A DNA stretch of 63,331 nt, filler included, from Guillardia theta CCMP2712 (Eukaryota > Protista > Cryptophyta), in assembly GCF_000315625.1 (NCBI RefSeq). It is 3 parts of 3 records of this genome, joined end to end, with 100 filler letters (N's around TTAATTAATTAA, not from the genome) between each part and the next. Parts side by side here need not be neighbours in the genome. Positions count along the whole stretch, not along the records: positions 26,928 to 38,796 come from NW_005434293.1; 2 more parts are not named here. The stretch is one strand, 5' to 3'. The translations under genes and the position numbers were made by a program. A model generated the notes under the pieces. The model worked only from the letters and a program-made list of their open reading frames with translations. It was not told the DNA's origin and ran no database searches. Shown here piece after piece: positions 26,238 through 39,267 of the stretch. How positions within the stretch are numbered: position 1 is the stretch's first letter; the number at the start of each line of letters is the position of its first letter.

Positions 26238-26929
26238 CTCCTTCTCATCCTACTCCTCCTCTTCTCCTCCTCTCCTTTCTACTCTTCTTCTCCTTTCCTC
26301 TCCTTTCCTCTCCTTTCCTCTCCTTTCCTCCTCTTTCTACTCCTCCTCTTCTCCTCTCACTTCACTTCTACTTGTCCTCTTCTCCTACCTCCTCCTTGGT
26401 TTTCTCATGCCTCTCTCCTGCTCCTCCTGCTTCTCTGTCTTCCACCTCTTCCCCCTTCTTCACATGTCCTCCTGCATCCTGCTCTTGCTCCTACTCCTGC
26501 TCCTACTCCTGCTCCTGCTCCTGCTCCTCCTGCTCCTGCTTCACCACCACCACCTCCTCCTCCTTCACCTCCTGCTCCTGCTCCTCCTGCTCCTGTTCCT
26601 GCTCCTGCTCCTACTACTACTACTGCTTCCCCCCGGTCAGCTTTTCCTCCCACTAGCTCTCTCTCTCTCTCTTTCTCTCTCTCTTCCCCTCCTGCTCTTC
26701 TTGTGATCTTCACCTTTCCAGCGTCTCCATGGGGCATTCAGATCGCCGTCGACGTCGCCCAATGTACGCCCCCTTCCTCTCTTATCCTAGTATCTGACTA
26801 GAAACATTCCGTCCCCCCCCCCTCCCTNNNNNNNNNNNNNNNNNNNNNNNNNNNNNNNNNNNNNNNNNNNNTTAATTAATTAANNNNNNNNNNNNNNNNN
26901 NNNNNNNNNNNNNNNNNNNNNNNNNNNCA

Positions 26930-28749
26930 TTCTTGCACTTTTCCCTTGGATCTCACCTGAATGGGGGCTCGTACTCGTTGCCGTAGCATGCGGCATAGAG
27001 CATGTTGCTGTAAGTGATCTTGTCCGGCTGCATCCGAAAAGGCGAAGGGGAGGAGAAAGTTAGAACAAGATGAGAGAAGAGAGAGAAAGTGGAGACAGAT
27101 GAAGGGCATAGAAGAGGAGAGAGGAAGAGGAGAGAAATGGAAGAGGAGAAGAGAGGAAAGAAACGAGGAGGAGAGGAGAGAAAGGAGGAAAGGAGGAAAT
27201 GGGAGAGAAAAGAGGAGGAGAGGATAAGGGAAGGAGAGGAGAGCAAAGAAGAGAGGGAAGAGAATAGAAGAGGAGAGGAGAGCATAGTACAGGGCAAGAG
27301 GGAGCAGGACACAACAGAGCAGGACAACGGACAACATCGAGAGGTTCTTACTTTCAACCCATCAGCCTTCAAGACATCGATGATACACATCGCTTGCTCC
27401 AACTTCCCTGCTCGAGATTATCAGCAAGCAAGCGAGAAATCATACTAACATCTCATTTGATTTGATCTGTGAACACAACAACAGCTGGTAGTGCATCAGA
27501 GCCTCACAAACACATCACGTCACGTCACGTCACGTCACGTCACGTCACGTCACGTCACGTCACGTCACGTCACGTCACACCACACCACATCACATCACAT
27601 CACATCACATCACATCACATCACATCACATCACATCACATCACATCACATCACATCACATCAAAAGAGAGCCATCTTTGTTGCAAACATTCTCTATCGTT
27701 GTCTTCACCTGCTTTCATCAAGATATGGATCATCTGATTATATGGGGCTGGGCTGCTCATCTTCTGACCAGAATGCCTCATAGTCTGCCACCAAACATGA
27801 TGAGAGTTCAAAATCATGTCTCCTCTTCCACTTTCCTCGTCGATGATAACAACAACATCATCATCATCACCACCGCCACCACCACCACCATCACCACCGT
27901 CCCCACCACCATCGCCATCATGATCATCCTCCTCCTCCTCATCATCATCACCATCACCATCACCATCACCATCACCATCACCACCATAATTGTCGCGTTC
28001 ACCTTGCCCTCACGATCTTCACTCACCTCAAATATTTCCATCGCCTTGTCGAGCAAACCGAGCCCTTTGCACGCATACAACACAGTTGTGTAACTGTGCT
28101 GATCTCTCTCCAAACCCTGCTCCCCCATCTTCTCAAACACACTAACAGTCGTCTTGAAGTCCTTCCTTCGATTCAGCGCAATCATCAGGTCGTTTACTCC
28201 TCGCATCGAGACCTTTCTCTTCTGAAAGAATGTCGTCCAGTCCAACTTGGGCCCACTAGAAATTTTCTCCATCCTCTCCTTCAGATGCTTCGGCCGTTTC
28301 TCATCCCTTGTTTTCCACTCCTGCTGCAGCAGCTGCTCCTTGGTAAAGACCCACGGGGGTACGTTTTCAAACCCTCTTATCCCTGCGCTCCTAAGCTTCT
28401 TCATCTCATCCAGTGTTACCTTCACCTCCTCCACCGCTCCTCCCTTCTTCTTCCTCATCGGCTTTTCTTGCGTCGACCCTCCAACCTCCTTCGCGAACTT
28501 CTGCATATCGCGCTCTGCTTCGCTGTTGTCCGCTAGACTGTTGACTGCAGGGTTGTTGTCTGCCATCCCCCGGGCAGGAGGCGACCAACCCTTCCGTGCC
28601 GTGGATGGGTGAGAGGCCAGAGGAGGAAGAACGAGCGTCCCCCTCCATGAGACTGAGAAGAAGCGAAGGGCGGAAGGCAGGCAGCACGTCCGAAACCTCT
28701 GCAAGGAGCTGCTGGCCGAGTACATCCCCACCCTCGTTGCCGCCTTCAT
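26930..28749 (-). CDS. Pentatricopeptide repeat (PPR) protein, probably organellar; 3' part runs into a gap
   Basis: PPR motifs: VNDLMIALNRRKDFKTTVSVFEKMGEQGLERDQHSYTTVLYACKGLGLLDKAMEIFE and LEQAMCIIDVLKADGLK|PDKITYSNML. The basic Ser/Arg-rich N-terminus resembles a mitochondrial presequence. Confidence 0.85.
27516..27661. repeat. Compound pentamer microsatellite (CACGT)n(CACAT)n, intronic
   Basis: Direct reading. Confidence 0.9.
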
Positions 28750-29019
28750 CTAGCGGCGAGCAGCAAGTCAGATATCCTGGTGAGCATATTTCTCAGTCCT
28801 CTCCATACTCCTTGACCTGCTCTAGCCATGGACCCACTGGACATTTTTAGCTCATCTGAGCCTCAAGCTCTGAAACCCCTCTACCCTATCATCCAGTCTC
28901 GACCCGTCAAATTCCTATTCCTCCCCTCCTTTTTCAATTGCCCCTGACCTCTCTGTTCTTCCTCCTGTTCTCCCTCTGCCTTCTCCCTCCACTGTCTCCT
29001 TTACCTCATCGCCTCTTTC

Positions 29020-29232
29020 TGCCCTGCCCTGCCCTGCCCTGCCCTGCTCTGCCCTGCCCTGCCCTGCCCTGCCCTGCCCTGCCCTGCCCTGCCCTGCCCT
29101 GCCCTGCCCTGCCCTGCCCTGCCCTGCCCTGCCCTGCCCTGCCCTGCCCTGCCCTGCCCTGCCCTGCCCTGCCCTGCCCTGCCCTGCCCTGCTCTTCTAT
29201 ACTCTGCTCTGCTCTTCTCTGCCCTGCCCTGC
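29020..29232. repeat. (GCCCT)n microsatellite
   Basis: Direct reading. Confidence 0.9.
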
Positions 29233-29824
29233 CGTCACTCCCTTGCTGGATCTGGACCAGTCGCAGGCGCACATGCAAGTACCACCCCTGTATAAAACTA
29301 CCCCTCAATACTGGGAAAAATCAGGGTTCTTCACTGTCGCCTGATAAAAGCAAATCCATTTACTTGGAAATATTGAAATATTAGAGTAGAGCTTGAAATA
29401 TTTTCGAAACTTATAACAATTTATTTTGATTCCGTTTCATTCAGTGACTGAACGTTTCAACGGTTTCAGGCCGCGGCTGCTCAGTGTCATGGAGGCCCGG
29501 CCCTAGCTAGTGGACCGGGCCCGGGCGTTGTTTGCCAACCTTGCTATCGACAGTCACGCGGCCAAAGAACAGCAGCAGAGCAGAATTTCCGACAGCCACA
29601 GAGCTGCCGCTTTCCGGAGTCCGGTGGCATCGCCGGGGGCCCGTGCCCGGCCGGGCCCGGGTATACTTGTAAGTAAAGTCTTGCCAGGCTCCGAGGCTCA
29701 CTCAGTGACATGTTGAGTAAGTTGAGAGAGTTGCTATGAATTGCTCAGCTCAAACGATTGCCTACAAATTCCCAGAGCGATTTTATACTGTTGATGCCTT
29801 TGAGTGACGCTTTAATTTTAACAC

Positions 29825-32800
29825 TCAATGACTGACAAACGTTCTTGAGAGAGAATCGCCGCCGGTCGCGACCATGAGCTCAGCTGGGACCCAGATAGAG
29901 AGCAGCTGGACCTGAAGGCCAGCAGGAAGTCACTGGGAGCCTTTGACGGTACTCTCCTGCGTTCCCAAGTAGCTCACTCGGAGCCTACGAGCCTAGTCGT
30001 GCCCCAGCACTTCTCCTGTCCTGTCCTGTCCTGTCCTGTCCTGTCCTGTCCTGTCCTTTTCTCATCTATTCTCAGCACTGAACTGAAGGCGTGAGTCCAT
30101 GCTTATCGCACTTTGGGGTGAAATTCGCTTTCCTCATCCCCTTCTTCCTTTTGTCCTATACTCTCAGCCCTGGCATTCTCCTCCTCCACCTCCTCCTCCT
30201 CCTCCTCCTCCTCTCTTGTACTCCTCCTCCCTTGTACTCCTCCCTTGTACTCCTCCCTTGTACTCCTCCCTTGTACTCCTCCCTTGTACTCCTAACTTCG
30301 CCCTGCTCCTCTCCTCCTCCCTCCTCCTGACCTGCTTCTCATCTCGCATCCTCCTGAATCTCACAGCCTCCTCATCCAGCAACGCATTTCCCTTGCAGCC
30401 TCTGTGGCATCGTGAGGAAGAGAACATCACTTGTAGCACCTGCCGATCAATCGCATCGAGCGATGGCTGGCTGTCTGACAAATGAAGGATAAGTTTGGAC
30501 TTGAGCTGCAGAAAAGGAGTGAAAAATACGTATCATGGTAAATGAAAAGAGAAGAGGAGAGGAGAGGAAGGAGAAGAAGAGATGGAGATAGGAAGCAGAT
30601 TCCCAAGAGGAGACAACGGGAGCAAAGAAAGCAGGAGCATGGAAACATAAGGGAGAGGAGGAGGAGGAGGAGGAGGAGGAGGAGGAGGAGGAGGAGGAGG
30701 AGGAGGAGGAGGAGGAGGAGGAGGAGGAGGAGGNNNNNNNNNNNNNNNNNNNNNNNNNNNNNNNNNNNNNNNNNNNNNNNNNNNNNNNNNNNNNNNNNNN
30801 NNNNNNNNNNNNNNNNNNNNNNNNNNNNNNNNNTCTCCTCGATGTATGCGCGACAAGAAGACACATTGAAAATGAAGTTGACGGAGGTGGGACTCATAGT
30901 AGATTCATTTGATAGAGATGACAAGTCCATGATGTGGCAAGCACCATACAGACCTGAGATAGCATGTGCAGTGACATCTCAGTCACCATCTCCTTCTTCT
31001 TGATTGTAGCAGCCATCGCTCTCTGGCAAGGTAGCTTTGAGTCTAGTATGGTTGGTGGAGTTTTGAGAGCAACTGAAGTCGGCATTGCACTGGTCCGATA
31101 GTTCAAGGTCCGATCCAAGCGAGGACTTTGGGAGAAGGGAGGGAGCCTCGTCGACCGATCGCAGCTCCTAGCTAAGCAAGGAATTCCAAAATTACTGATG
31201 CAACCTCGGGCCCCCCCCCTGGTCTACCCTTCAACCCCCCCATGTCTTCTCATTCTTCGCCTTAGTGCATATGGCATTCCATCTTGCCCGGACGAGCGGT
31301 CACACGGCTCCCCGGCCCACCCCTCCCCCCCCCACCCCACGAAGATCATAGCACCGGAATTATTAGACGTGGAGGAGGAGAAGGAGGAGGAAAAGGTAGA
31401 GTTTTTGGTGGTGGTGGAGCAGCAGCAGAAGCAGGTGGTGCAGGTGTAGATGTACGATGAGCAGGAGAATGTGCGGACAGAACCTGCTGCTCAAAACAGG
31501 AGAGGCAGTGATTGACCGCCTGTTACTGAGTCAGATGTTGGTGAGCCTGACATCGCCATTCGTCACCATCAACTCCCTTGTAGCCTGATCCACTTGCTCC
31601 CCTCGCTTTCTTCCCCCCCGCTCCTGCTCCTGCTCCTCCTCTTCGAACCTGCTCCAAGTTGGTCAAGATTGCTCTACCAGCAGCATCGACGTACCTGCCC
31701 CATGCTCTCCGTACCAAGACTCTCTTCTTGCCGCCATCCTCCCTGCTGTGTACACCTGCCCCGCTCCCTCCTTCCTCCTCCTCCTCTGCCTCGGCTGTGG
31801 ATCCTTCGGAAATGAGCAGCCCCCCCCACCCAAGAGGAGACGCGTCTGTGATGAGTATAGCTTCGATTTCAACCTCCTCATCCTGTTGGAGGAGGAGCTG
31901 GAGATTCGTCCATCCCATCCTCCATGCTCGTTGACAGCTAGAAAACTCCCTCCTGTCCTCTGGCGACTCCTTCCCCTGGCTTCCCTCCACCTCCACCTTT
32001 TGCCTGCACCTGATGGTGAAGGAAAATTCAGTCGCTCCTCTACCTCTCCTCGATCTCTGCTCTCTTTCTTTCTCCCCCCCTTCTCTTCCAACCTCCCTCC
32101 TTCTCGCTCTCTCCCCCTTTCTTGAACTTCTCCTTCCCTGCCTGCCTTGACCCCTCCCTCGTTCCTACCCTCCCTCTTTTCTCCATCTTTCTCAGTCTCT
32201 GTTTCTAACGTCTCCCTCCTTCTATCCTCTTTGTTGTTCTCTTCCTCCGCTTCTGCTCTCCTGCCGCTCTTCCCCCCTCCCACCCTTTGCGCACAGTCAC
32301 AACCGGCACACAGCAAGTCGCCACCTGGCAAGAAACTCGCGCACTTGCTGATCTCCCGCATTTGCAGAGCTGGCAAGTAGGCAGCAGAGTACGACGAAGG
32401 TCTGAACAACATTGCTCCACTCAAACACAACAAGATCGTCACACGAGAGCTGATGTTGAGATGTTCGCGAGTTGATGATTTTGTTGCTGCATCGACGTAC
32501 TCAAAGGAGTCCAAGTTAGCAAACAGGAGAGATCTCTTACATTATGGCAAGCGAGCTTGACAGCGGTGAAGTGTCCTTGTATGTGATGATACAAACTTCT
32601 TCCTCACAACGTGTATCAGGCGGATTATGAGACATCTCGGCAACAAGTAGCAGGAAAGCATGTCGGATGAGATTCAGAATGTTCAACAGACGATCTCTGT
32701 CTGTCATCCTCACCAGCTGCTTCTCATACTCTCTAATCACTGAGGCAAACCTCTCACCAACGTCCCTGCTTTGAGATTGCAGTATGCCAGCTCCCTTCTC

Positions 32801-33649
32801 CAAGACGCTCAGGGCCTTGAGAAAGGAAGAGCTTTCATCATGGCGGAGAAGCAAGCACAGCTGCAGAAGTTGCAATGAATGAGAAATGTGCTGCTATGAA
32901 GCAAAGAAACTGCACAGACCTTGACAAACGATGAAACCTTCAACTTCAGCTGGTCGTTCTCCTCTGCCATCTCCTCCAACTCTCTCCATCCCATCACTCC
33001 TTTCTTGACGCACAACCCGCATATCTCCATGACAAGAATCAACAACGTGCAAAGACAAGAGCACACAATCAGTTCAAAGTGTCTCGTCAACAACTTCCAT
33101 CTCAGTTTTCTTTACCTGTGTGAAAATGTACTTGGTCGCTTCATCTACCGTCTCTTCTCCATTCATCAATGATTTTGCTTCCTGGTACATGCCCAATCCT
33201 GAGTTTCTTCGCCTTTACATTTCAGTTTTCAACAGAAGCAAACTAGCACCATGCTGCTTGTTGTCAAGCAGCTTCTTCAACTTCCTGTGTTGGTGTCACC
33301 TCATCAAAAAATCTCTATCCCAAGGACCTCCGAAGTTGATGAGAATGTGCAAGACATACAACGATGCTGGCTTGCCTCTTGTCTTGTCTCCACGTACTCG
33401 ACGACTTCTTCGATCCAACACAAGGCGCTCCATGGCTGCTACCCACAACATTCACAACACATGGTCACATGATCGGTGGCAGTCGGACACAATCATTCAC
33501 ATTCTCCATGTCAAACATACACCATCGACGCATTCTCTGTCTCAAACAAACAAGTCTCACCGCGGAAGGAACGCACTGTCCACTGATGAGAACGGGGTCA
33601 CTCCTTGCACAAGGACGAAGAGAATCAGCAGTTTGAACACGTGCGCCAT
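29825..33649 (-). CDS. Intron-rich gene ending in a DIRS1-type RNase H domain, with a putative bipartite plastid presequence
   Basis: Spliced C-terminus: ILITDASPLGWGGLL...RAWGRYVDAAGRAILTNLEQ|ATRELM|AVNHCLSCFEQQ|LKSKLILHLSDSQPSLDAIDR|GCKGNALLDEEAVRFRRMRDEKQ|VQLLSIWVPAELMVATGGDSLSRTFVSH*. N-terminus MAHVFKLLILFVLVQGVTP-F. The RNase H call is firm; linking the 5' exons to it is inferred. Confidence 0.7.
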
Positions 33650-33914
33650 GGCGCTGATATCATCAGGGCACAAGGCAGAACGAAGGAGAAGGCAGCTGTG
33701 GGAAAATATATCAGTGCGTGCAGCATAAGACTAAAAGGGTAAAGACAGCTCTCTTTGAAGAGGTACATAAAGCAAAGGATTGCTTCTGACAGGATCAAAC
33801 ACAAGTTGACGAATAATACAAGAGGTATGAAAGGCACGCAAATCAAAGCCAAACAAAAGATGAAAGCAAGAGCAAGAAATTCTTCACAGAAGCAGGAACA
33901 GGAGAAGGAGCAGG

Positions 33915-34025
33915 GCCAGGACCAGGAACCAGGACCAGGACCAGGACCAGGACCAGGACCAGGACCAGGACCAGGACCAGGACCAGGACCAGGACCAGGA
34001 CCAGTACCAGGACCAGGACCAGGAG
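33915..34025. repeat. (CCAGGA)n microsatellite
   Basis: Direct reading. Confidence 0.9.
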
Positions 34026-35510
34026 CGGGTCAAGAGGACCAGAAGGATCAGGGCATTGAGCTGAGCGAAGGGACTCAACTCACGTTCACTTTCACTCAAT
34101 CTTCAGTTCACACCGTGATTCACTAGTACGGTACTGAGTCAGTCAGGCTCGCCGGGACTCCGACGGCGGAGGCCCGGCCCCCGGGCCCCGCCGGGATCAT
34201 CGCCGGGGCCCAATGATTCTGGCACTGTGACCAGCCCGGCGGTATGGAGTGAAATGATCCAAGTTTTCTCTTCTCCGGCCGTTTGGCATGTGCGACAGCT
34301 GGCTGTCCGACCGTCGCACAGCCAGCTGTCGAAACTCGACAGCCAGCTGTCGAAACTCAGCAAGCTGAGCCGTCGCCGACTCGCCCGGCGGGCCGCGCGA
34401 AGTTTTGGCTGTCTCGTTCTCGTGTTCGAAACTGCCTTCTCTGCCCCTAGTGCTTGTCTCAGCGGCGGCCTATATGAGGATCGGCCTTTTCAGTTAAGAG
34501 GGTCTGTTCTCCTCATGTTGTAGCTAGTAAACTCGTAGTCTCAACTACGTTGATCAGCCAGTTGAGCCAGTCAAAGTTTGACGTACTACCTGATGGCATT
34601 CCAGTCGCGTCAAAAGTTACACCTCTGTCTCTGTAATATGCTTTCAAGGCATTCTTGTACGACTGCAGTGCTCCTAACCACAGCGTTCGTTTGCTCGCCT
34701 GGTATCCTCAAATGCCATGGTTCTCAGGCTCATGTAGATTGCCCTTATGCGGATCATCTTCCTGCTCTTCCTGCTCTCCCTGCTCTTCCTGCTGACTTTC
34801 TTGACTTTCATGATCTTCTTTCACACCCTGAAGCTTTACGTCCCGACATAAGGACGTGGAGAGAGGTAGATATCGCCTACAGATCCTTTTGAGCAGCCAC
34901 TCCAGCAAACTCAACTGAGAGACTGGACCCCATTCCTCTAACCATCCGTGACCGTCAGTGGAGCTCCTTGAGGCAACTGCTGAGCGCTGAGCTTGGGGTT
35001 GCCGTGGCAGATGAAGCGATCTCTGTGCGTGACAAGATCCTGGATCAGAGCGAGGTAGGGAAACTCCTACGACGAGCCACTGCCTCCTCGGCCCCTGGTC
35101 AGTTTGGTTGGCAACATTTCAAGCACAAGGGACGTTTTCGAAGATTGGATGATGATCACAAGAAGAGACGCGTTGTCCTATCTTGAAGCCGATCGCGCTG
35201 GCCCTCATGCCTTCGGGAAGTTCTGGAGGAAGTTGCCCGGCCGCTGCCGGTTGCCGGAATGATGTGCCAGCATGCATCGCTGACGCTCGAAATCGCTGGC
35301 TCGAATGCTGCGGAGCGACTCCAGGAGACTCCAAGAGGCATGCAGCCGAGAGCACGCGGTGATCTAGGACGAACAGCACACTTCCAGGCGTCTAGATTAG
35401 GTTGGGCGAGGGGATTCAATTTCAATCAAGATGGGGACAGGTCTGAAAACAAACTTATGTTTATACACTCAGGTAGGAAACTAGAACACGGGAAAGGGTG
35501 GGCGATCAGT

Positions 35511-36431
35511 CTACATGTACTCCTTCACGGTAGGAGAACGGGCTCGAGGGCCGTCTTGGGTCTTCCCTAGATCCTTCTTCACTGGCACGGGGCCAGAGGG
35601 GGGTGCAGCAGGAGGAACTTCCTTCTTGACCCTGAACGAACCGCCTCGCATTCTTGCCCCAGCATCGTTGAGCGCTGCCACCCAGTTGTCTCTCCTGCTC
35701 TCACTCTTGCAGAAGAAGTGGATACTCGAGTCGCAAGAATCCCTCGACGTGCCCTCCTCAGTGCTGAGGATGAACATTGTCGCGTGCTTCTCACTTGTCT
35801 TGATAACTGTGTCCCTCAATCTGAACATGCCAATTTCCCGCGTGAAGTCGTTCCCAGCAAAGATAGACATGATGCCCTTCTCGTTCACAACGCACAGGAC
35901 CTGCATACCCGACGTCGAGCTGGGACTCTCCCGGAGCTCTAGATGCCCTCGGATCTCATGCTGCCTAGTAGCGTCATGGTCTGCGGTGTGGAGGTTGGGA
36001 AGTGATCTAAAGGGTGCGCTGTCCTGTGCCCGAAGTGCCGCCTTTCGCTCCTGTATCTTCATGTCGACATTATTCCTTGGCGAAGTAGCAGGGGATAGTT
36101 TCGAGCTTCCAATCTCAGCTATTCTCTTGCTGTTACTCGGGTACGCAGCCTGGTGGCTTTCACCTCCTGCGATTTCAGGAAGGCACGAACGTTCGTCCTC
36201 AATAGCAAGCCTTGAGGGCCTGTCCGGGACAGCCTTCAGGAAAGGACGGTACCTCCGAGGAGAGGTATTGGGGGACTTGTATCCAAGGAACGTGTTTGAA
36301 TCATAATCCTCATGTCCATGAGGGCAGGGTCTTCGTTCGAGGTAGACATTTGGCCTAGTTTGGTCTGTGGCATGAAGCAGATGCCGAGAGAACAATGCTG
36401 GAGCAATACGCAGGAGGGAAAAGAGTATCAC
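35511..36431 (-). CDS. PH-domain protein
   Basis: IRGHLELRE...VLCVVNEKGIMSIF...EIGMFRLRDTVIK...FILST...IHFFCKSESRRDNWVAAL: PH beta-sandwich plus the C-terminal helix with the conserved Trp. The true start is uncertain. Confidence 0.7.
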   Translation of the reverse strand: MILFSLLRIAPALFSRHLLHATDQTRPNVYLERRPCPHGHEDYDSNTFLGYKSPNTSPRRYRPFLKAVPDRPSRLAIEDERSCLPEIAGGESHQAAYPSNSKRIAEIGSSKLSPATSPRNNVDMKIQERKAALRAQDSAPFRSLPNLHTADHDATRQHEIRGHLELRESPSSTSGMQVLCVVNEKGIMSIFAGNDFTREIGMFRLRDTVIKTSEKHATMFILSTEEGTSRDSCDSSIHFFCKSESRRDNWVAALNDAGARMRGGSFRVKKEVPPAAPPSGPVPVKKDLGKTQDGPRARSPTVKEYM

Positions 36432-39267
36432 AAAGAACTGAGAGCTTGAAGATACGAGGAATAGACAACCAGTGAAGGGGGGGAGAAGATAAAGGAAGGG
36501 GAGGGGTAAGGGAGGGGGTGGGGACTGAAACGCCGAAGGCTTTTCGAGATTCAGTCACGTGATGGAGAAAGATGGAGAATCGAGCAACAAGCAAGAGAAG
36601 GAGGAGGGGTAAGAAGGACGAGATATAAGGAAGATGGAGGTAGGAGCGGAAGGGAGGAGGAAGCGAGAGGAGGAGGAGGAGGAGGAGAGGAATGCGCTAC
36701 TGCGTTGGAGGACGAGGAGTGTGCGAGGGAATTCAGGATCGGGTCTTGCGTAAAGACCTACGTAATACCTTAGTAGGTGGGGTGGTGAAAAGATGGGGGT
36801 AGGGGTGAATCGGAGTTCACAGAATTTGGGACATGGGTAGGGTAGTTGGAAATATTCTGAGGGTGGGTCCACGGACCCTACCGGTAGAGATACTATTAAG
36901 GGATGACCATGGAGCTTGCCTTCACTGTTAGGATGGGTGGGTGGTACCTTTTTGGAAAGAGGAGAATACCATATATACTGCCCTTGGCCAAATTCATTAC
37001 ATCTTCACTTATAGAATTTTCACCCTTTGTGTATATGGGAGCACATAGTCTCATCAAGGGCTGATGAAGTACGAGGGTACAAGGGGTAGGGTTATGATAC
37101 CTCCAATGTGCGGTTGGGCACCCCCTCTGTGACGGAACGGGGGTGGGGTGAGGGTCATCACCATACTTATGACTGGAACTGAGGGGGTAGGGATCACTGG
37201 AGGAGTGGGGTGGTGATGGAATATGGGCTAGAGGTTGGTAGGTTTTGAGGGGGTAGGGGTATTTCAAATGTCTCACGAGGTGGGGTAGGGGTGGGTATCG
37301 TGATAATGTTTACCTGGGGAGAGGGTCAAGAGGCTACAAGGGACAGTCGCTTCCTTTGAGGGGGTACCAAATGAAAGGTATGAAGATTAGTGGGTAGGGG
37401 TTACCGTTATCACCCTAGAGATTCTCTTGAACTTTCTTTAAAAGTACCGGGTCATTTTAAACTATGAGGGGTACTTGATACCTTCATGTTTACAACGGGG
37501 GTAGGGGAGGTCCTTTCGGGCTCATCACTTGGTTTTACGATACGATAACTGAGGGAGTAAAAATCCGTTTTTGACTGGGTTGGGGTAGTAAACTACCCAC
37601 TGTTTGACTCAATATATGACTGCTTAGTACGGGTACTGGATATCATTGGCTGGGGTCCTCGCGGTGGGTCACGGAGCACTTGGTTTCAATTAGGTCCGTG
37701 ACTTTCAGTACTAGGCCAACCCGCCTCATGATTCTGGTCTCGGCTACCACCCCACCCCTCTTTTTCCCATAAAATATACCCCATAGATAGACTTTCTCGA
37801 GATATTCGAGGATTTCCAGTCAAACTCCCCGATGTTCCCCCAACCGGCGCGATAGTACTTCTGAATGTATGGGGGTGGTTTAGCTTAGAGTACCATGGGT
37901 AGGGTGGGTTACACTTTGACCTCCATCATACATGTCCAACTAGAACAACTTACAAGCAATCTAATGATTAATTTTGCAGTAGGTATCTACTGTACCCTCG
38001 TGCAAACATGATCAAACCATGATGAGGGGTACTTTTGACCTGGTCTTCAGGACAGGGGGGTGGAATGAATGGGAGGGTGGTGCGATGCTGCTGACTCGGA
38101 GAAGGAGAGCGGCCATGGTCATCAATTAATAAAATACTTTTATAAGCTAAAAGGGTTATTGAGGGCAGAGGAGTTAAGTGAGGTCAAGAGGTTAGGACCA
38201 AACCTGCAGACTCAAGTTCTGAAAAGTGCATTCATAATTTGAAATATACGAAAGATTATTTCAATTGATTTCAACGTGGTAAAGGAGTCGTTGGAAGCAC
38301 ATGATCACGAAAGATACCGGCAGAGGCAGGAACCATTTATGAAATAGAGTCTTTTCGAGTTTTACAACATTCCCCTGTGACTTCTTCATGGCCATGAGAT
38401 CGAAGCAAGGCTCAACTCCTCAACTCCGGCCCGGTAATGGTGAATGAATGGCTCGTACCGATCTTTTTAACTTAACTTTGACTAAAGATTTGTTTGCGTT
38501 TACTCAAAGTTAAGTTAAAAAATGACAGTCACTGCCTTCCAGGTCGTACTGATTTTTAACTTAACTTTGAGTAAATGCCAGGCTGATTGAGTAGAAGCCA
38601 CTGAACTTCCGCAGACGGTTTGAGTCACTGAGAAGCCTACCGGGCCTGAGTGGCTACTAGCCGCCATCATGAGAGTACGACCGGAGGCCGCCCGGCCCGG
38701 GCGCGGCCGGCCGTCTCCGGCCCGGGGCGACTCCCGAGTCCGGCCGCGGGGAAGCCTACGTAGTCTCGGCCCCTGATCCGATCGATTGTCCGATAGNNNN
38801 NNNNNNNNNNNNNNNNNNNNNNNNNNNNNNNNNNNNNNNNTTAATTAATTAANNNNNNNNNNNNNNNNNNNNNNNNNNNNNNNNNNNNNNNNNNNNCTGT
38901 TACTTGGTGTCTATTAAAACATACACAACGTCAGCGTCCCCGTCATAGTCATCACCATGAATCATCCTCCTCATCTTGCATCCGTAGAACATCCTTGGTC
39001 TCTCTTTCCTGACACTTCTCTCTCCTTGTTCTTCTTCAACATAAGTCTCTTCATTTCGTTCCCCCCCTCGCCCCCTCCCCCCCCCCCCCTGTCTTCATTC
39101 TTTCATACCACCGCCCCCACTCCCCCGAGCCTGCCTGGTTTTCCCTTTTCCCCGTACAAATAATCCCGCCCTCCCTTCCCGCTCCCCTGCCTCTCGCCGC
39201 GCGCCGTCAGCGAAGGAGGAGATGAAGTGAGCGAGGCAGCCGCTGCTGTCATCCCGACCAGTCGAGC

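Follow-up and report, generated by a model that had tools for sequence, protein, structure and literature searches.

GUITHDRAFT_149474 of the cryptophyte Guillardia theta CCMP2712, annotated as a hypothetical protein on scaffold JH993345.1 of assembly GCA_000315625.1, is one real, expressed, multi-intron nuclear gene. It was studied within a stretch of 63,331 nucleotides (nt) of this genome (RefSeq assembly GCF_000315625.1), here called the window, whose positions are used throughout; the piece that carries the gene, from NW_005434293.1, occupies positions 26,928 to 38,796. The first three exons most likely encode a plastid-type bipartite presequence and the last five an exonised, decayed fragment of a retroelement pol gene, with some 170 helical residues between the two. 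The C-terminal half, as judged from the order of its motifs, is probably an eroded pol remnant. The composite proposition, in which a plastid-type presequence and such a remnant are joined in one spliced, lineage-specific gene, we regard as evenly poised. The host possesses a plastid of red-algal origin that is surrounded by four membranes, and it retains a nucleomorph.

The unity of the gene is established by contigs of two sequencing runs, X1 and X2, that come from two studies. Nine joints were found in these contigs over positions 30900-34900, and all of them read CT..AC on the plus strand and so GT..AG when read on the minus strand. The clean removal of nine canonical introns shows X1 and X2 to be RNA; a contig of the DNA-like run X9 is unspliced over 32273-33884. 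At the site of a tenth intron, contigs of both X1 and X2 carry 208-244 letters past 31484, the first 30 of which map uniquely to 30476-30505, right behind an AG. After the shifts offered by the alignment, all 10 introns are GT..AG. Record 5 of X2 covers exons 1-7 and record 1 of X1 covers exons 7-10 and continues into exon 11, the two overlapping by 117 nt in exon 7. A first-pass annotation, made from the DNA alone, had tentatively assigned the collinear upstream exons and the RNase H-like part to one gene, and this is borne out by the ten GT..AG introns, through which the MAHVFKLL exon is connected with the exon that encodes TDAS..GWGG.

Some caution about this structure is nevertheless warranted, as exons 1-11 are pieced together from overlapping contigs, none of which spans them all, and the joint between exons 7 and 8 is found in one contig of one run (X1) only. 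The 3' end lies outside the region to which contigs were aligned, so that the lower border of exon 11 is 30332 or lower; if 30331 is not a donor, the frame continues to a stop at 30164-30166. A contig of X2 over exon 8 extends 16 nt into intron 7 (32010-32025) and is unjoined to exon 7, and a 101-nt contig of X1 reads through intron 6 (32457-32557); these read-throughs may be retained-intron isoforms or may point to an internal start. Expression looks low, with 8 reads recovered from 6% of the raw RNA run X13.

Translation would begin at the ATG at 33649-33647 on the minus strand, which opens MAHVFKLLILFVLVQGVTPFSSVDSAFLPR ahead of the first GT donor. Going upstream, the first in-frame stop is met after 27 codons, and no ATG in this frame intervenes. 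From this start the frame remains open over all ten junctions, with 0 stops in at least 503 codons, compared with 19 stops in each of the other two spliced frames and 25-38 per frame in the unspliced DNA; when the coding sequence was shuffled 20,000 times, no stop-free frame arose. The product would have about 503-558 residues, encoded in at least 11 exons, and the preservation of the frame speaks for a protein that is produced and has some importance. Both -3 and +4 of the ATG are G. A weak point in the case for the presequence is an upstream open reading frame of 12 codons, MISAPWRTCSNC (33625-33663, minus strand; ATG 33663-33661, stop 33627-33625), which starts 14 nt before the main ATG, is out of frame with it and overlaps the main start.

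The existing JGI/NCBI model, P0001 (31531-33649, minus strand), has the same start Met and includes the TDAS exon. Compared with the RNA it is without exons 2-3, lacks 37 exon-6 and 38 exon-7 residues, and terminates by reading into the ninth intron. The two exons left out of it account for most of the transit-peptide-like part of the protein. A word search with the open reading frame that bears the TDAS motif returned one protein, the 323-residue product of GUITHDRAFT_149474 (P0001), at 99% identity. Coordinates of the features are collected in the table.

Table. Features of the GUITHDRAFT_149474 transcript and its predicted product, in window positions. A slash within a motif marks the putative cleavage site.
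Feature	Positions	Strand	Basis
Signal-peptide-like segment, codons 1-26: n-region MAHVFK, h-region LLILFVLV, c-region ending SVDSA	33572-33649	-	
ASAFAP-like motif SVDSA/FLP, Phe27 (33571-33569) at +1	33563-33586	-	ASAFind matrix
Second candidate, Phe20, register QGVTP/FSS, weaker	33592-33590	-	ASAFind matrix
Transit-peptide-like part, codons 27-78: from the end of exon 1 through exons 2-3 to the first codon of exon 4 (introns 1-3 spliced out)	33197-33571	-	
5' untranslated region, at least 48 nt	33650-33697	-	X2 record 5 reaches 33697
Exon 1	33561-33697	-	Joint 33435/33561, GT..AG, in X1 and X2
Exon 2, absent from JGI model	33328-33435	-	RNA contigs
Exon 3, 35 nt, absent from JGI model	33250-33284	-	RNA contigs
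Exon 4	33116-33198	-	RNA contigs
Exon 5	32920-33024	-	RNA contigs
Exon 6, mostly helical	32541-32860	-	RNA contigs; AlphaFold2 (AF2) model
Exon 7, with IINKII (across exon 6/7 joint), SCDDLVVF (32423-32443) and REFLAR	32325-32486	-	RNA contigs
Exon 8, with CQRAW (31922-31936), LITDASPLGWGG (31820-31855) and acidic insert	31695-32009	-	RNA contigs; exon 7/8 joint in X1 only
Exon 9	31567-31648	-	RNA contigs
Exon 10; ELMAVNHCLSCF formed across exon 9/10 joint (31493-31575)	31484-31519	-	RNA contigs
Intron 10, 978 nt as assembled; (CCT)n run and 100-N gap (30734-30833) inside	30506-31483	-	
Exon 11, with LILHLSDS (30470-30493) and KGNALLD (30374-30394)	30332 (or lower)-30505	-	X1/X2 loose end

By sequence criteria, the N-terminus has the features of a bipartite presequence of complex red plastids, and its scores lie within the range seen for plastid proteins localised by experiment. 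In diatoms and cryptophytes such presequences consist of a signal peptide followed by a transit peptide that starts with Phe (or Trp, Tyr or Leu), and proteins without an aromatic residue at +1 are directed to the periplastidial compartment (PPC). The transit peptides of plastid proteins are net positive, almost free of acidic residues over the first 15 positions and uncharged from +1 to +3. This literature upholds the rule on which the first-pass annotation relied, namely that Phe at +1 of the transit peptide directs stromal import.

The h-region of the putative signal peptide reaches a maximum Kyte-Doolittle value of 3.04 for a 9-mer (residues 7-15). Three registers were scored by hand with the ASAFind matrix and script (PMC4329603, supplement), and the sums were rechecked. 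The register SVDSA/FLPRHG, with F27 at +1, gives 7.69 for the 25-residue cleavage window and 4.96 for the 20-residue transit window; QGVTP/FSS, with F20 at +1 and Pro at -1, gives 4.91 and 4.44; and VQG/VTP, with V17 at +1, which is the best by the -3/-1 rule, gives 2.97 and 2.18. In the reference table of PMC4329603, localised plastid proteins score about 8-9.2 (cleavage) and 4.8-5.8 (transit), signal-peptide proteins of the endoplasmic reticulum (ER) or PPC about 3-4 and 1.2-2.4, and the ASAFind transit-score cut-off for high confidence is 2. By a rough hand estimate, about 1/1000 random signal-peptide N-termini would reach 7.69, a score that calls for Ala at -1 together with Phe at +1 and for better than average values elsewhere in the window.

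The F27 register agrees with ASAFAP at 4 of 6 positions (-2, -1, +1 and +3), and the composition that follows is of the kind expected. Residues 27-46 contain no Asp or Glu and carry a net charge of +4, with the uncharged FLP at +1 to +3. Residues 27-78 as a whole include 2 Asp but no Glu and carry a net +10, compared with -15 over the remaining 425 residues. Both the cleavage motif, by its ASAFind score, and the transit composition agree with those of plastid precursors, the former conditional on a SignalP site within two positions of residue 27. The first-pass annotation had placed the cut before the earlier of the two Phe. Its plastid-type features stand, as does the Ser/Lys/Arg-rich stretch, which is now recognised as exons 2-3, but the P19/F20 site (Pro at -1, 4.91) gives way to the better DSA/FLP with F27 (7.69). 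A match of the exon-1 peptide LILFVLVQGVTPFSSVDSAFLPR (33572-33628, minus strand; P0001 residues 8-41) to the helix-F region of the kinase TSSK6 was discarded as chance, with 11 of 24 residues identical and an E-value of about 1 against the PDB.

From these features, entry of the product into the complex plastid appears marginally probable; its arrival in the stroma is a more tentative proposition, somewhat short of probable. The alternative to be weighed is an ordinary ER signal peptide or anchor in which the Phe is incidental, which would lead to the ER or secretory pathway, or else a presequence cleaved to a non-aromatic +1 (at G16/V17 or S25/A26), which would lead to the PPC, the nucleomorph-containing compartment where proteins without an aromatic +1 go. 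We regard this as unlikely, although there are arguments in its favour. The best sites under the von Heijne (-3,-1) rule are VQG/V and VDS/A, and both F20 (Pro at -1) and F27 (Asp at -3) break that rule; moreover, the specificity of the low-confidence class of ASAFind is only 0.82-0.88. The score of the DSA/FLP window, 7.69, is nevertheless well over the 3-4 of the ER/PPC reference proteins, and the 20 residues from F27, acid-free and net +4, follow the plastid pattern, unlike that of PPC proteins. Further considerations temper the case for plastid entry. ASAFind slides two positions from the SignalP site, and a site at G16/V17 would give 'not plastid'. The Asp at -3 of the F27 register has a value of zero in the ASAFind matrix (Table S2) and never occurs there in the training proteins, and the matrix itself is diatom-trained, with a sensitivity of 0.70-0.85 in G. 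theta.

The remainder of the protein raises a different question. From exon 6 onward it presents, in this order, IINKII, SCDDLVVF, REFLAR, CQRAW, AILITDASPLGWGG, RELMAVNHCLSCF, LILHLSDS and KGNALLDE. We take SCDDLVVF, as a lead only, to correspond to motif C of reverse transcriptase (RT), the chain of motifs resembling that in pol of the Ty3/gypsy and DIRS types. On the same assumption, LITDASPLGWGG is presumably the motif around the first Asp of RNase H and ELMAVNHCLSCF / RELMAVNHCLSCF its helix A with the Glu, LILHLSDS would hold the second catalytic Asp, and KGNALLDE the last. A candidate D-E-D-D set can thereby be read in order from TDAS, RELMAV, LSDS and NALLD, by patterns chosen post hoc and with the spacing of LSDS off-pattern.

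Of seven RT/RNase H patterns, six were matched in order, whereas shuffling residues 79-503 with their composition preserved gave no more than three in any of 200,000 trials. The p-value should not be read at face value, as the patterns were drawn up once the sequence was known. The TDAS..GWG pattern never arose in the 200,000 shuffles. In the Protein Atlas, clusters of RVT_1, RT_RNaseH_2 and RT_RNaseH are among the nearest structure neighbours of the P0001 model (pLDDT 0.39; TM 0.2-0.35), and the feature neighbours listed for residues 205-312 include Pao-retrotransposon and RT_RNaseH clusters. With TM values of 0.2-0.35 and scores <0.9, these matches all fall short of the trust levels of the Atlas.

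How the RNase H-like frame is put together deserves attention. The RNA-supported frame reads exon 8 as ITDASPLGWGG. Exons 8 and 10 share a genomic frame from which exon 9 departs. Introns 8 and 9 are 46 and 47 nt long (93 nt in sum), and a TAA in the frame shared by exons 8 and 10 is spliced out with intron 9. The two introns jointly restore the frame, and therefore the Glu (helix-A) motif exists only in the spliced message. This arrangement looks like splicing around debris. Exon 8 also encodes a 28-residue acidic low-complexity insert (31724-31807), and long acidic inserts of this sort fall within the putative fold.

Profile and structure searches weigh on the other side. No Pfam family was matched by exons 6, 7, 8 and 11 (E<=10), by the unspliced 191-residue open reading frame (E<=1) or, apart from DUF2064 at E=0.16, which is not relevant, by P0001 (E<=10), and phmmer against the PDB (E<=10) returned nothing relevant for exon 8, exon 11 or P0001. 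The AF2 model of P0001:196-312 has a pLDDT of 49 and is unusable. Matches to the RT_RNaseH (PF17917) and RT_RNaseH_2 (PF17919) profiles were likewise absent, which is a weak negative in that single exons and P0001 were queried. For the cellular type 1 enzyme (RNase_H) there was no Pfam match in any exon or in P0001, and no match in the PDB. These negatives are weakened because the putative domain is spread over exons 8-11, each piece of which is short. Upstream of the RNase H-like part, the helical exons that had been predicted are recognisable with modest confidence: the AF2 model of exon 6 (pLDDT 62) has three long helices and a hairpin, for which Foldseek found only generic helical bundles in the PDB (E>0.9).

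The first-pass identification of this part as RNase H thus finds no profile or sequence support, and what speaks for it are the collinear motifs and the weak Atlas neighbours. The notion of a retro-derived RNase H gene fares better in its first half than in its second, as the motifs are retroelement-like but the likeness begins upstream, at RT motif C, and does not describe a clean RNase H. On balance, an origin of residues 246-490 from the RT-RNase H of a retroelement seems to us quite probable. The locus is not an intact retroelement: it has ten introns, acidic inserts and unspliced frames broken by stops, and no long terminal repeats (LTRs) or other retroelement parts were found nearby, the repeat search of the piece having detected microsatellites only.

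That the likeness is coincidental, the gene being a lineage-specific orphan of non-retroelement origin with acidic low-complexity stretches, seems rather unlikely. In its favour, neither Pfam nor the PDB gave a relative, nor did phmmer, the word searches or a scan of metagenomes. Two word searches over 5.8 billion clusters returned only the GUITHDRAFT_149474 protein itself, phmmer of P0001 against 1.84 billion representatives returned P0001 and one spurious protein (P0002), and the metagenome scan yielded no relative. The seventh pattern is unmatched, and the helix-A motif arises only when splicing joins two genomic frames. Set against this are the absence of LITDASPLGWGG from 200,000 shuffles, the canonical order and rough spacing of six motifs, and the recurrence of retroelement RT/RNase H families among the nearest Atlas neighbours by two measures.

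No orthologue was found by word, phmmer or metagenome search, in libraries whose cryptophyte coverage is not known, and there is therefore no sign of purifying selection beyond the open frame, which also tells against the composite reading. The spurious protein, P0002 (1689 residues), was rejected as a relative, having matched P0001 residues 172-212 through summed repeats at about 28 bits per repeat. A repeat of 46 residues, ...GDQKMKSSLSSY.QKSVLAKVEDGYGNLDPNVRNNFHDCQRGWGIG, occurs at least 16 times in it, and its Pfam matches (AF_0587-like pre-PUA and DUF2322) also look repeat-driven.

Less tenable still is a domesticated, catalytically active plastid RNase H that removes primers or R-loops, which we consider very unlikely: the ordered candidate catalytic residues (D of TDAS, E of RELMAV, D of LSDS, D of NALLD), the predicted plastid-type presequence and the expression of a gene that has kept its frame are in its favour, but a housekeeping organelle enzyme would be expected to be conserved at least in cryptophytes and no orthologue was found, the putative fold contains long acidic inserts, no profile recognises the domain and apparent expression is low (the 8 reads from X13). 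The role in plastid primer or R-loop removal put forward in the first-pass annotation is speculation; no orthologue was found, so the usual evidence of domestication is missing. More generally, it is doubtful that the RNase H part is still active, and more likely that it is inactive or re-purposed. That a retrotransposon RNase H with its D-E-D-D intact acts on RNA:DNA hybrids in the stroma, or in the PPC or nucleomorph if the mature N-terminus is non-aromatic, we judge highly improbable. Such an organelle-acting RNase H would, if true, be the first retroelement enzyme known to have been recruited to an endosymbiotic organelle, and its activity would represent an unprecedented recruitment to organelle DNA metabolism.

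We return, then, to a plastid-type presequence placed ahead of an eroded pol remnant. In this scheme the precursor would enter the ER around the complex plastid and be cleaved near residue 26, and the newly exposed N-terminal Phe would allow passage toward the stroma. Residues from about 246 to 490 would be the remnant of an LTR- or DIRS-type pol, made up of RT palm motif C, the connection and RNase H, which is now interrupted by introns and microsatellite-like acidic inserts and from which frame-breaking stretches are spliced out. The gene would be lineage-specific, a decayed retroelement insertion having probably been exonised behind exons that encode a presequence. If the presequence works, this would be a natural example of how a new protein gains entry to a four-membrane plastid, with presequence exons standing before an unrelated coding sequence. 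It would bear on lineage-specific gains of organelle proteomes and on the ways in which decayed mobile elements turn into genes. For the present, GUITHDRAFT_149474 is a hypothetical protein with a good targeting signal in silico, one among many Guillardia orphans.

Two further genes are called on scaffold JH993345.1, encoding a PPR protein and a 265-residue product. At 27814-28749 (minus strand) lies a PPR-repeat protein (Pfam), whose long open reading frame enters a microsatellite that codes for His, Met and Val, and at 35511-36431 (minus strand) an open reading frame with a weak PH-domain match (E 5e-4, below the Pfam cut-off); both neighbours share the minus strand with GUITHDRAFT_149474. 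No tRNA or Rfam family was found in the piece, and the locus tag is unmentioned in the literature searched.

The genes are flanked and interrupted by long microsatellites. A (CAGGAC)n microsatellite lies about 220 nt upstream of the transcript 5' end (33916-34040), others occur among 27491-27680 and 28959-29273, where they include (CACGT/CACAT)n and an array with a 10-nt period, and an (AGG)n run (30647-30733) borders the 100-N gap inside intron 10. A CT-rich, microsatellite-like stretch, CTGCTCTTCC..., extends over 34652-34900 with its peak at 34757-34790. Its word depth is 5410 in X1, 185 in X2 and 88 in X9, compared with about 6 nearby, and it shows a fixed C>T at 34778. Contigs of X9 that join this stretch to 31640 were rejected as a false join. 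It is probably a dispersed short repeat unrelated to GUITHDRAFT_149474.

Like pol of the Ty3/gypsy and DIRS types (RVT_1, RT_RNaseH_2, RT_RNaseH), the C-terminal part has xCDDLVVF, FLA, CQRAW, ITDASPLGWGG, ELMAVxxCLxxF, LSDS and KGNALLD in collinear order. It differs from them in its ten spliceosomal introns, its large low-complexity inserts and the lack of a profile match; neither the RT motifs expected upstream nor gag, protease, integrase or LTRs are present, and the contiguous genomic frame is broken by stops.

The N-terminus compares with the presequences of the ASAFAP class (Kilian & Kroth 2005; Gould et al. 2006; ASAFind PMC4329603, PMC12136025). It shares with them a hydrophobic signal-peptide-like segment, a cleavage motif with Ser-Ala at -2/-1, with Phe at +1 and with Pro at +3, and a transit part that is uncharged from +1 to +3, acid-free over 20 residues, Ser-rich and net positive, with scores in the plastid range; an intron just behind the motif is a further resemblance. 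In contrast to them, it has Asp at -3, a long c-region of 12 residues, a second Phe 7 residues upstream and an orphan cargo.

A plastid RNase H does have a precedent in AtRNH1C, the chloroplast RNase H1 of Arabidopsis, a canonical, conserved cellular type 1 enzyme whose biochemistry has been tested and whose loss affects chloroplast development and genome integrity (PMC12652420). The Guillardia protein resembles it in being nucleus-encoded, with a predicted organelle presequence and a putative RNase H-superfamily part, but shows no similarity to cellular RNase H in Pfam and would be of the retroelement type.

Domesticated retroelement genes occur in animals, where families such as PEG10, RTL1 and Arc are derived from gag or protease, are conserved between species under purifying selection and are mostly intron-poor. 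Here, by contrast, no orthologue was found, the part retained would be RT-RNase H, and an organelle presequence is predicted in front of it. What GUITHDRAFT_149474 would have in common with these families is retroelement coding sequence kept as an open reading frame of the host.

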